Positions 30,481-41,367 are shown, numbered from the stretch's first letter. The stretch: DNA of 64,000 nucleotides from Paragordius varius (GCA_964247055.1 OZ176050.1:14384001-14448000), one strand, 5' to 3'. A program made the numbers and translations. Notes: a model not told the origin generated them from the letters alone.

Positions 30481-33400
30481 TTAATTGTCATATGTAATAT
30501 ATTGTTCGGTAGCTCGGTTAGTATCATAAACTCCACAATCCGTGCATCTAAGATTTTCCCCAGTTACTTGAGTCTCGTTCTTACAGTTTCGGCACAAAAG
30601 TAAAAATGGGGTGTGTATATTAACATCTGAAATCCAATATTCTATCCTATCTATTTCACAGTTAATATTAAAATTATAAATATACGTATAAAAAGTAAAA
30701 GCATTCATTTGTTTTGATCTTTGATTTATTCTATTTAACATATGTGTTTACGATTGTAATATATTTATTTGGCTCTACCAATTGGCATTAAACCCTTTTT
30801 CGCAACTAAGATATAAAATCAATTCTAAAAAATATAATTGTATATATATAAATAAAGCGTGTTTTATTTTTGACGTTTTGTCTTTATAGGTTTAATTTTT
30901 ACTGTAATATATACAGTAAAATAGATAAAAGTATTTTTCAGATAAGAGTTCAAAATCCCCGAAATGGTTTGCCACTCTTGGCATATTAAAATTATACATG
31001 TATAATCAGCTAAGAATGTTAGGTTATGACGACCCACAACTTAACGTAATGAAGTACAATAATTTGTAGTTATTTCTTTAATCCATATCACTCTAATTTT
31101 TAAATTTTATTAAAAAAATTATGGCTTCATGAGTTTGACGTGATATCAATACTTTTTAGCATTAATTTTATTTAATGATCATAAATTTCCAATAATTAAC
31201 AAATAATAGAGGCCTTTATCTTATATATTTTTAAAACTAAACTTTTTAAAACTAAAATTTTATGTTTCCTAAGTAAGTTTGTTAAATCATTACCCGTGAT
31301 ATAAGCTAAATATATTTTTTGCCCATACGTTTCCACTTTCCGTGCCCCTATATAAGGGTGAATTCGAACAGTCATTAGGACGTTTGGTATCTTTTCAAAT
31401 TCAACATGGTAGTTCCTCTAATTAAGTAAAATAATTATTTGCTCCCCTCTATATCTTTAGGAGCTATTTAATTTATATTGAAAAAAGTATAGCTAATTAC
31501 TGTATTTATATGTCTAAAACTATAATTTCTCGGCTGACAGCTAACATATGTATCGAATTGTGTGCGAATAGCATTATCCATATATAATCTTATAGTATCA
31601 GTTTTGATTTCAAAACCCTTGATGTATGGCTTTGTCAAGTTGGCTAATTTGTGAAATATTACATTTATATGTCAAGAATTTTTTCATAATAAAAATATAT
31701 ATACATAATTATTACCCAATAAATTGTTTGGGATTAAACTGCTTCCGAATTCATAATTACACCATCTGTGACCATTGCAACATGTTAGGTTGCCATCTCT
31801 AAATGTGGTATCAGGATCATACATCGATATAGTCGCACGGTTGGGAGGACAGTTGCGATTTTTTTCCGCTCCAATCAGACAACTTTAATATTAGTGTGTT
31901 AAATATAAGATTAAATAGGATATTTTTTTAAATTTTAATATTTATAATAGATTGAAAAAACTAAATCTCTCATATTAACTTAAAATTGGGTTCGCGTTGC
32001 GCTTGGAGCCAAAAATCCAAAAAGTGTGATAGCCAGCTGCTTTTTAATGATTCATGATTAAAAATTAGCAAAAACTATTTAAATAAATCGTTTGGTGATT
32101 TTACTATAGGCTTTCCTAAATCTTTACGACAAAAAACAATAAAACTAAAGTTCTCCACGAGACCAAACATTTTAATCCAAGGATAATAGTTTTGCTATGA
32201 TCAGTATCGATATTTAGACTTTTTGCATTAGGATTTAGTCTTAAATGATAAATTTTAGGTTTTTCCATGTTAAATTTCGTCTTATCTAAAATCATAATTA
32301 ATCCGGTTTCTTGTAATATTCCAAACGTTTTACCCCCAAATGTTTTGGATTTGAAACGTCCCTATCTTAAAATAATCTTCAATAACATACAAAACTTATA
32401 TATTTTTATAGTTTTGGTATCAAAAATGTAGAAGCTCGATAGCTCTTAAAGCCCGAAAATCTCGTTTATAAAGATAAAACCAAAAATTTTAGTTAGTAAC
32501 TAAAACTTTGCAAAAAATAGGTTGAAACTCTAAAATTTAAATGTTTGCCTATCAATAACATTTGATATCTAAAAAGTGAAGCGTCTAAGCGGACAGGTAA
32601 AAATTCAAGTTATAATTTTTAAAAATATGTCTATTGGAGTTTTCAAGTCTATAACTCTTAACAATGACGAACTGGCTATTTAATATAATTTTTACAACAT
32701 ATGGTCAGTCTTTTTTGGAGCATCAAATATGATTTTTTTTGTAATTTATACAAAGTAGTATCAAATATTTATACATAAAAAAATTCTTAATTTTAAGTTT
32801 TAGATCGATATATTATGAATAAAATGTAATTATCCCCATCATCTCAGGTACTGAACGGAAATCCTTATTTTAATTATAAAAAGTTAGAAAGCTAATGTAT
32901 ATTGTTTGGATAGTTATCCTCTACATCAACAATTTTTTATCAAATTTCCTAATGTGATTATGAGAAATTGAAAAAAATATGATTTTTCATTTTATATGGT
33001 TTTTTAAACCTGAAGGACGCACAAAATATTTTGATCCATATAAAATATGATAACGGAAATTTAAGTATTTGTGTGCTTAAAAATAAGTTTTTTAGGTTTA
33101 TTTTCCTTATATGTAACCTTGGGCCAGATTTTTTAGTTTTCTAAAAGCCGTTAAGTTATTTTCAAAAAAATTAAATTTAAAACTATTTTATTTGGCATGA
33201 TATAAAGCGTTGAAACAGCCATATATTAAAATATATATTTTATAAATTAAAAAAATTAGAAATTAAAAATATAGCGGGGAATTTATTAAATAAAAATAAT
33301 TTTGAATTTCTGTTAACATTTTATATATATTTTTGGAATTCTCATCATCAAAACCTTATATTTTTTAATTTTTAGATTCTCACTAATAAAATATTGGAGT

Positions 33401-35129
33401 TTATAATTACAGTAAAATTTAAAATACGGACAAAACTAAAAATATAAAACGAATGTTTTTTTCTAAAAAACAACCATAATTTCATTATTAAAAGGATAAC
33501 TTATTGTTTTAAATTGCAAAATATAAAATTGATATGTATATTGGTTACACAATCAATTATATATTAAGGTTTATAGAAGTATGGTTGTCTTTTAGAAGAA
33601 AATTGTCTTTATATTTTTACTTTTCGTATAATCGCAGTTTTTACTGTACTTTTAATTTAATTTTTCGCAATTTTATTGATTAATATTGCTTTTGCTTAAG
33701 AATACATAAATGTGAATAAAACTTTTTGGGTGCTCCAAATGAAACGTGATCCCTCCACATTCTTTGGTAATTTCGATTGTCTTTTATTTTTAAAATGACA
33801 TTTTAAAATAATCTTAACATATTTAAAATAAAATATTCCAAAGCATTTATATATGAACAGAAAAGATAGGCATATATATACCATTTTACAGTCATAAGCA
33901 ACATATATTCGAGCAAACGCAACATTTTTTTATCCAAACCCAGCATTTTTCAATCAAAAGCAACGCTTTAACCAAAGACAGCATTTTTCCAACCAAGCGC
34001 AACATTTATTTAAGCAAAAAACAACAATCGTTCATCCAAAACATTAATTATTGGTCTTTGCACAGAATAAGTTGCATTTAAATAAAAAAATGTTTCGTTT
34101 AAAAGAAAAAATATTGCGTTTGGATAAAAAAATTGCTTTTAAAAAAAAGGTTGCTTTTGATCAAAAATGGTATATCAACTGGTATTTAAACTATAATGAC
34201 GGGATTGAGAATTAATATACACCTTTTAACAAATGGAAATTAAAATAAGTTACAATAAAATATTAATTAAATCAAACACGATCGATACATAGTCAAATAC
34301 CCATAAGTAGTCCCCGATGGCCTCTTCAAACGATAACATGAGCCAGGATAATTAGTAAAGCATGCATAGTTGTATTGAGTGCAGTTCGAGCAAAAGCAAG
34401 AGAGCACTAAAATATAATATACATACCATTTTTAATCAATAGCAACATTCCGGTTAGCGCATATGTAATATTTTCTACATATATTTTACTGAGGCACAAT
34501 GATATTTTTAACCAGAATTCAAAGGTTATTTTAAAGTTTCTAGATAAGTTAATCGCATTAAAGCTGCCCCATTTAGAATTTAATTCTATTTGCTTTCAAA
34601 TAATCTTAAATTTAAAGTTTAAGACCAAATTTATATTTAATTATTGTGGTAAAAAAATACATATGTTTTGTAGCGGTTTCATTTATAAAAACAATGGCAA
34701 GAAGTTTAAAATACTGTCAAATTGGAGGAAATTAGATTGATGTTAACAATGATTTATTCCCAAATAATTTGTAAGGCCGAAAACCAAAAGTCCATAAATA
34801 TTTTGGGATACATTTTACCATAAATATATATTTTCATCGGGACATTTTTTATTAAACACGATCTTATACACTGGGTGAATCAAAAACAATACTAAATTTT
34901 TTTAAATTATGCACGATAAATTATTGTAAAATGTTTAAAAAGTTTTTTAGAACAGAGTTAGAAAAAAGAAATATTTTAAAATTGGTCTTTAAAAAATGAA
35001 AAAATTTTTACATTGATCTTCATGAGGGAATAAAGTTTGTGAAATAACTGAATTCTTGAAGTCAAAACAAATCACTATTAATATAATAACTTTATAGAAA
35101 GCTGAAATATTTGTCCAGTAAAAATGCAT
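30481..35129 (-). CDS. Unnamed secreted protein X1: signal peptide + BMP type-I-receptor-like ectodomain + FN3-like domain + CxxC-x12-CxxC tail (6 exons, 275 aa)
   Basis: Exons (minus): 35129-35012, 34406-34301, 31882-31716, 31643-31501, 31417-31294, 30650-30481; GT-AG, phases 1,2,1,0,1. Peptide begins MHFYWTNISAFYKVIILIVICFDFKNSVIS, then LSCFCSNC...CFTNYPGSCY...TYGC...NLTCCNGHRWCNYEF. Exon structure is mirrored by paralog X2. Confidence 0.85.
33880..34168. mobile_element. MITE family B (TA|CCATTTT...AAAATGG|TA) with ~21-bp gcaacatttttcaagcaaac units
   Basis: Termini match family A but the internal repeat differs. Related partial copies at about 27630-27720 and 27875-28000. Confidence 0.7.
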
Positions 35130-40664: not shown

Positions 40665-40704
<40 letters not shown>

Positions 40705-41367
40705 AAACTAATGTTAAATTAAATATGAAAAATGAAATTTAAGTCAAACTCTAATATGACCTAAAAAACTGATGTGATAAAATATAATGGTGTTAGCAAT
40801 TTATCTCTGATAATTTTGCATATGAAAAATTAATTTGTTAAAATCTAATCTAAACTATCTTTTATGGACCAAAGTCAAAACGAACAATAAGCGATGCTTA
40901 AATGGTTTTAAGTATAAATTTTTTGAAAATCCAAAATACCCATAAAAATTTCCTGATGACCTGGCAAAATGGTAACATGAGCCAAGGTAATTAGTAAAAC
41001 ACACGGAATTTTGTTGAGGGCAGTTTGAGCAATAGCAGGACAACACTATGAAAAATTTTTAGACATACTTTTACAACATATAAAATACTGTCAATTTCTC
41101 AATTGCCTCAAAGAAATAAAATAAAGTCTTTAAAATTTCTGATAGGCTTATGTTAGCAAATAATTTTAAAATTTACCAGCTTTTTAAATTCATTTTATAA
41201 ACATAGAAAATTTGGATTATCAATTTTTTCAAAAATAAAATATTATTACAATTATCTTCATGAGGAAACAATGCTTGTGAGACTACTGAATTTTTCAAGT
41301 CAAAAAAATTTACCATTAAAAAAATTATAATATATAAATTTAGAATATTTTTCCAGTATAGATGCAT
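36270..41367 (-). CDS. Unnamed secreted protein X2, tandem paralog of X1 (6 exons, 275 aa)
   Basis: Exons (minus): 41367-41250, 41045-40940, 40666-40500, 39769-39624, 39313-39190, 36436-36270. Same intron phases as X1; four of six exons identical in length (118, 106, 167, 124 nt); open frame with the stop codon at the same aligned position. Confidence 0.85.
37927..38492. mobile_element. piggyBac-like MITE, copy 2, last intron of X2
   Basis: TTAA flanks; colinear with 19313-19894. Confidence 0.8.

Follow-up and report, generated by a model that had tools for sequence, protein, structure and literature searches.

What do two neighbouring, unannotated genes in the genome of Paragordius varius encode, and is the product a soluble relative of the receptors that bind ligands of the TGF-beta (transforming growth factor beta) superfamily? 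The genes, called X1 and X2 here, lie head to tail on the minus strand and span positions 30481-41367 of a 64,000-nucleotide (nt) stretch (GCA_964247055.1 OZ176050.1:14384001-14448000), which we refer to as the window and from whose first letter all positions are counted. An earlier reading of this DNA, made from the sequence alone (the sequence-only reading), had proposed two secreted, kinase-less proteins resembling the type I receptors for bone morphogenetic proteins (BMPs), which might act as ligand decoys. We rebuilt both genes, compared them with each other and with known proteins, and weighed the explanations that the comparison allows. The one that we consider probable is that X1 and X2 are old tandem duplicates that have remained functional and that belong to a family restricted to one lineage, whose modular products are secreted and N-glycosylated.

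Two tandem genes with a common exon plan

The sequence-only reading had described two genes of six exons and 275 amino acids (aa) each. Rebuilding X1 from anchor strings gave six exons and 828 nt, and the resulting 275-aa protein was identical letter for letter to the one described; X2 likewise consists of six exons encoding 275 aa. X1 spans 30481-35129, with introns of 605, 2418, 72, 83 and 643 nt (5 of 5 with GT..AG borders), and X2 spans 36270-41367, with introns of 204, 273, 730, 310 and 2753 nt, again all GT..AG. The intron phases are 1, 2, 1, 0 and 1 in both genes, and the intron lengths differ widely between them despite the common exon plan. The proteins share 67% identity. A tblastn search of the 64-kb window with X1 as the query found X1 and X2 only, and no third copy.

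All of the following features are on the minus strand. Exon 1 of X1 (35012..35129) contains the ATG, the predicted signal peptide and the start of the mature protein, and ends in phase 1. Exon 2 (34301..34406) encodes the first half of a domain of apparent Ly6/uPAR (LU, three-finger) type, with Cys1-Cys5 spaced C-x-C-x2-C-x6-C-x7-C, and exon 3 (31716..31882; phase-1 end) encodes its second half, with Cys6-Cys10, CC-x5-CN and a linker. A Cys-poor middle module is divided between exon 4 (31501..31643; first half, with a Cys166 found in X1 only) and exon 5 (31294..31417; second half, 78% identity to X2, phase-1 end), while exon 6 (30481..30650) supplies a CxxC-x12-CxxC tail, a hydrophilic end and the TAA stop at 30481-30483. 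The corresponding X2 exons are located at 41250..41367 (exon 1, ATG and predicted signal peptide), 40940..41045 (exon 2, LU Cys1-Cys5), 40500..40666 (exon 3, LU Cys6-Cys10 and linker), 39624..39769 (exon 4, the middle module's first half), 39190..39313 (exon 5, its second half) and 36270..36436 (exon 6, tail with four Cys and TAA stop). An AATAAA hexamer follows 17 nt past the stop of X1 (30458..30463) and 24 nt past that of X2 (36240..36245), which is modest support only, because on either strand of this DNA a kb contains ~3 such hexamers.

Two further observations concern the edges of these models. A (TA)n microsatellite at 40667-40700 abuts the acceptor AG of X2 intron 2; (TA)n is frequent window-wide. 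In addition, an acceptor-like AG is located 12 nt upstream of the X1 start codon (35130-35145) and 5 nt upstream of the X2 start codon (41368-41375), and these sites could belong to an intron in the 5' untranslated region or serve as trans-splice acceptors.

Predicted secretion and modular anatomy

The sole hydrophobic segment in either protein covers residues ~3-29 and is likely a signal peptide cut after ..NSV[IV]S. No 19-residue window beyond this segment had a Kyte-Doolittle hydropathy >1.6, so no transmembrane (TM) helix is predicted, and a glycosylphosphatidylinositol (GPI) signal was not found in the last 20 residues, where the mean hydropathy is -1.16 in X1 and -0.53 in X2. The build is therefore that of a secreted, anchorless protein, as the sequence-only reading had it. 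The mature proteins are ~28.5 kDa with isoelectric points of 7.6-8.1.

In both proteins the Cys residues of the N-terminal domain are at positions 43, 45, 48, 55, 63, 76, 86, 109, 110 and 116, a span of 74 residues, and the domain ends with CCNGHRWCN before the linker LIPNNLL. After the linker comes a Cys-poor stretch of ~100 residues with alternating hydrophobic residues, followed by the CxxC-x12-CxxC motif. A Cys tail had been claimed for these proteins, and its four Cys are conserved in both copies; the N-x-S/T sequons claimed along with it include three that are conserved in position between X1 and X2 (N106, N132 and N170/171).

The phase-1 introns 1, 3 and 5 fall exactly between the signal peptide, the Cys domain, the middle module and the tail, and introns 2 (phase 2) and 4 (phase 0) sit within modules. 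Phase-1 introns at module borders are the textbook arrangement of shuffled extracellular modules. The description of the middle module as FN3-like makes it a candidate for that fold, based on a strand-like pattern seen by eye; exons 4 and 5, searched singly against Pfam and PDB sequences, did not match FN3, and neither had any other meaningful match in the PDB. The tail gave sub-threshold Pfam matches to zinc ribbons, with a likeness that runs through the CxxC pairs only, and in a secreted protein these pairs most likely form two disulfides.

Evidence that both genes are functional

Between X1 and X2 the synonymous divergence (dS) is 0.79-0.91 and the nonsynonymous divergence (dN) is ~0.19-0.20, which gives a dN/dS ratio (omega) of 0.25 by NG86 and 0.21 by maximum likelihood (ML). 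The most constrained parts are the middle module (omega 0.19) and the Cys domain (0.22), and the least constrained is the tail (0.53). Identity is 65% at third codon positions and 80-84% at first and second positions. When the two loci were compared by sensitive blastn, six collinear blocks corresponded to the six exons, with ends within a few bases of the exon borders; the exception is the exon 4 block, in which the alignment extends ~30 nt into the intron. The remaining matches between the loci were non-collinear copies of a ~240-bp dispersed repeat. The exons have a GC content of 0.30-0.37, compared with ~0.20-0.25 in their surroundings.

All fourteen common Cys are kept in X1 and X2; ten of them belong to the N-terminal domain and the other four to the tail. 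The best-conserved segments are Cys4-Cys5 (7/8 residues), the Cys6-Cys7 stretch, the CC..CN cap (10/11), EKNRNCPPN, which spans Cys7, and the base of finger 3. Both open reading frames (ORFs), all ten splice sites, the intron phases and the fourteen Cys have been kept since an old duplication; function is therefore strongly argued, and the substitution pattern indicates that X1 and X2 are real genes under purifying selection.

Nature of the ten-Cys domain

As defined by Leth et al. (2019; PMC6600238), LU domains have 60-90 residues, ten plesiotypic Cys with disulfides 1-5, 2-3, 4-6, 7-8 and 9-10 and, following Cys10, an Asn that is not glycosylated. An LU gene has a signal exon and a pair of exons bordered by phase-1 introns, and the intron between the pair interrupts loop 2; such genes are frequently found in tandem clusters, and the partners of secreted LU proteins are very diverse (PMC6600238). 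Type I TGF-beta receptors merely retain the ancestral LU signature (PMC6600238), and the Pfam family of receptor ectodomains is characterised by CC-x(4-5)-CN and has a conserved Gly before Cys6 (PMC3196573).

X1 and X2 have the ten Cys in the consensus order within the expected length, and their disulfides would presumably pair as in other LU domains. An Asn follows Cys10 in both copies (CCNGHRWCNYE), and N-Y-E is not a sequon. The gene layout is also that of an LU gene, with phases 1, 2 and 1; intron 2 splits the Gly codon just before Cys6 and is thus located at the end of loop 2, not at its tip. By every point that can be read from sequence, the N-terminal domain is of the LU type. The sequence-only reading took the ten-Cys pattern as the mark of a type I receptor ectodomain. 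The full set of Cys, ending in CC-x5-CN, is indeed present, but its use as a type I diagnostic did not stand: the pattern is generic to LU domains (PMC6600238) and therefore does not by itself identify a receptor ectodomain.

The sole receptor-specific evidence is in the first finger. The X1 domain starts L-x-C-F-C-x2-C-T-x2-N-x2-C-x-T, and its Cys spacing (C-x-C-x2-C-x6-C) is identical to that of TGFBR1. A phmmer search of 177,635 PDB sequences with X1 exon 2 (34 aa) gave five matches, all to TGFBR1 or ACVR1B ectodomains (E 0.5-2.4) and aligned in register at the first residues, with 11/22 aligned residues identical to TGFBR1. Four of the five entries represent variants of a single protein, TGFBR1, so the independent matches number two. 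Ly6, CD59 and toxin chains, though many in the PDB, were absent from the exon 2 matches. With a pre-specified family on top, the first finger is suggestive of type I receptors. It is similarly suggestive of the ALK4/5 branch over BMPR1/Thickveins, a preference that is not robust; the kinship with Thickveins/BMPR1 proposed earlier was not borne out, since TGFBR1 and ACVR1B, of the ALK4/5 branch, were the only receptor matches. A language-model search with exon 3 retrieved TbetaRII ectodomain, LY6/uPAR, Activin_recp and snake-toxin clusters with scores of 0.68-0.74, a lead only, which backs the three-finger superfamily and no particular branch. Fragments of exon 2 and of exon 6 gave nothing informative in searches of this type.

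A proposed role and the evidence against it

If X1 and X2 are a functional family of secreted modular proteins, as we think probable, a mature protein of ~28 kDa would be released from the cell and bind its partner in soluble form. Recognition would take place on the concave side of the LU domain, and the middle module and the disulfide-stapled tail may be spacer, docking or oligomerisation parts. The Cys6-Cys7 segment corresponds to the site of the ligand-contacting helix in type I receptors. With its C-x-C start, the first finger appears to be of the type I TGF-beta-receptor/BAMBI kind, and the chances that the Cys domain derives from a receptor ectodomain are about even. Among single candidates for the partner, a TGF-beta-superfamily ligand comes first, though it is still an unlikely one, and X1 and X2 would then be decoys or ligand shuttles.

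Several results weigh against this explanation. Mature X1 has an odd fifteenth Cys, Cys166 (31540-31542, exon 4), which is Ser in X2; as an unpaired thiol it could make an intermolecular disulfide. The five RNA runs of the species, all of them small, contain next to none of the sampled words of the locus. The receptor matches of X1 exon 2, with the E values given above, are not significant on their own, and they were not reproduced in the PDB by X2 exon 2, by a two-sequence profile or by exon 3. Exon 3 matched spider toxins in the PDB through the word HRWCxYE, which we regard as chance, the toxins having another fold and another Cys frame. Neither Activin_recp (PF01064) nor UPAR_LY6 was matched by Pfam on single-exon pieces of 34-55 aa, either cut exactly or extended as far as they stayed stop-free, a blank that does not count against membership because such pieces are too short; Pfam does recognise exon pieces of at least 100 aa in this genome, as it matched potassium channel exons of 100-157 aa elsewhere in the window. 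AlphaFold on single exons was uninformative, with a predicted local distance difference test score (pLDDT) of 49 for exon 6 and 44 for exon 3. Pfam matches of exon pieces to AcrIC5 and Cys_knot were rejected as chance.

Alternative explanations

It is quite possible, if somewhat short of probable, that X1 and X2 are ordinary, elaborated secreted Ly6/uPAR proteins with no TGF-beta-receptor ancestry or link, in which the C-x-C start is convergent. Their partners could then be channels, proteases, lipases, complement, or gamete or pheromone receptors. The first finger speaks against it: LU consensus proteins (CD59, bucandin) begin C-x2-C, not C-x-C, and no Ly6, CD59 or toxin chain was among the PDB matches of exon 2. 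The gene structure and the Cys set are, on the other hand, exactly plesiotypic; LU genes are typically found in tandem clusters and secreted LU proteins are common (PMC6600238). The same explanation agrees with the language-model matches, in which LY6, toxin and receptor clusters are mixed at similar scores, and with the lack of a Pfam Activin_recp match on exon pieces, but it has to accommodate LU domains joined to other modules, which is rare (PMC6600238).

A special case of the explanation that we prefer is that X1 and X2 are soluble BMP, activin or TGF-beta traps made from a type I receptor ectodomain, which would lower or reshape Smad signalling. We rate this as rather unlikely. It would account for the TGFBR1-type spacing of the first finger, with about half identity over 22 positions, for TGFBR1 and ACVR1B as the only PDB matches, and for the presence of CC-x5-CN and of the Gly before Cys6; the proteins are also secreted, lack a kinase and have a Cys6-Cys7 stretch that is well conserved between the two copies. 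Engineered receptor ectodomains work as ligand traps (PMC8718839). However, neither the ten-Cys pattern nor the gene layout is particular to receptors, both being general to LU proteins, and the receptor matches were neither significant nor reproduced with X2. The spacing in finger 3 also differs, with 22 residues between Cys7 and Cys8 in X1 and X2 compared with 13 in type I receptors, and the Phe-Gln hot spot of BMPR1A is not evident in the Cys6-Cys7 stretch. Finally, the breadth of partners among secreted LU proteins (PMC6600238) also counts against a TGF-beta-family ligand.

The complete form of this proposal is a genome-encoded family of soluble ligand traps that arose by fusion of the type I receptor ectodomain with a beta-sandwich module and with a tail knotted by disulfides; we consider it quite doubtful. 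If the proteins are such traps, they would be, to our knowledge, the first natural, dedicated secreted decoys of the type I receptor, and a new class of extracellular TGF-beta/BMP/activin antagonist.

It is very improbable that X1 and X2 are pieces of a conventional membrane receptor or pseudoreceptor with TM or kinase exons that were missed. Introns of 2.4 and 2.75 kb could conceal exons, but the six exons are the only conserved blocks between the loci, and both genes stop in-frame in a terminal-looking exon 6 with AATAAA after it. In none of the six frames does the region 26.7-43.5 kb contain an HRD, DFG, APE, Gly-loop or SGSG motif or a further coding piece that convinces, in agreement with the earlier description of the proteins as kinase-less and lacking a GS box. 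A missed TM or kinase exon had been considered, for example, for the introns at 30651-31293 and 36437-39189; in blastn comparisons these contained nothing common to the paralogs except dispersed repeats, and no conserved block. Just as improbable is that X1 and X2 are decaying or never-expressed duplicates without function, which would fit the lack of relatives in 1.84 billion protein representatives or metagenome contigs but not two ORFs intact at dS ~0.8-0.9 and omega ~0.2, in which the 14 common Cys, the intron phases and every one of the 10 splice sites are retained.

Distribution and comparison with known systems

For the preferred explanation, a functional and lineage-restricted family of secreted modular proteins, we looked for relatives in public data. 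A profile of exon 3 gave 0 matches at E <= 0.001 against 1.84 billion protein cluster representatives, profiles of exon 3 and of exon 5 detected no relatives in two metagenome scans, and exact-product look-ups for two ORFs returned no record. The blank among the cluster representatives means only that public protein sets lack close relatives, the paralogs in this genome among them; distant kin could escape because a 55-residue query is too short for so large a library. The sequence-only reading had not recognised the architecture, and a literature search found no described family with an LU and FN3 build and no natural secreted type I receptor proteins. LU domains are hardly ever combined with other modules (PMC6600238). 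The parts of X1 and X2 are of known kinds; what is unusual is a secreted protein in which two unrelated modules accompany an LU domain. Almost always, an LU domain is either single, part of an LU-only repeat array or the head with which a TGF-beta-family receptor kinase binds its ligand.

Among known proteins, the ectodomains of TGFBR1/ALK5 and ACVR1B/ALK4 (Activin_recp, PF01064) have the same ten-Cys order and the same first-finger spacing as X1 and X2, and type I receptor ectodomains are also alike in the Gly before Cys6 and in CC-x(4-5)-CN. They differ in that the receptors have a TM helix, a GS box and a kinase, all of which X1 and X2 lack, whereas X1 and X2 have a longer finger 3 followed by an unrelated module of ~100 aa and a tail with four Cys; the similarity is statistically weak. 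BAMBI, a pathway inhibitor (PMC10728939), is like X1 and X2 in having a type-I-like LU ectodomain and no kinase. Unlike X1 and X2, in which there is no second hydrophobic segment, BAMBI is transmembrane with a short cytoplasmic tail.

SLURP-1/2, PATE1-4, SP-10 and Ly6/CD59 resemble X1 and X2 in exon layout, ten Cys, the Asn and tandem clusters (PMC6600238). SLURP-1/2, PATE1-4 and SP-10 are secreted single-LU proteins and Ly6/CD59 are GPI-anchored. All of these consist of an LU domain only or of LU repeats, whereas X1 and X2 add two modules and have no GPI signal. The mode of action proposed for X1 and X2 resembles that of receptor-Fc fusions, in which a soluble receptor ectodomain is carried on a non-receptor scaffold, as described in PMC8718839; these ligand traps are artificial, and ligand binding by X1 and X2 is a proposal from sequence. 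Should the LU head have kept its affinity for a TGF-beta-family ligand, X1 and X2 would be natural counterparts of receptor-Fc drug traps and a new layer of morphogen control in Paragordius varius. If there is no such ligand, they would be a clear case of the LU 'proto-module' acting as a true mobile module.

Surroundings of X1 and X2 in the window

The window is very AT-rich, with a GC content of 0.20-0.35. The ~240-bp dispersed repeat, probably a SINE- or MITE-like element (short interspersed element or miniature inverted-repeat transposable element), is present on both strands, filling spacers and introns within X1 and X2 as well as around them, with copies 70-88% alike. Copies were located at 4507-4748, 6602-6797, 28646-28871, 29138-29320, 33560-33632, 35684-35802, 36469-36618, 37438-37631, 38650-38890, 43266-45213 and 49768-50045. 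Just upstream of X2, the segment 41800-42830 has a GC content of 0.33-0.41 and contains several stop-free pieces of 50-78 aa with no Pfam match.

A tRNA-Ile gene (anticodon AAT) is located at 26596-26670 on the minus strand, ~3.8 kb downstream of X1 (Rfam, 64.9 bits; ARAGORN). Pfam also identified exons of an eag/KCNH-type potassium channel at 49124-58679 on the minus strand, where the matches were to PAS_9 (58.4-58.7 kb), to Ion_trans (55.9-56.4 kb; 53.4-53.7 kb) and, weakly, to cNMP_binding (49.1-49.5 kb).

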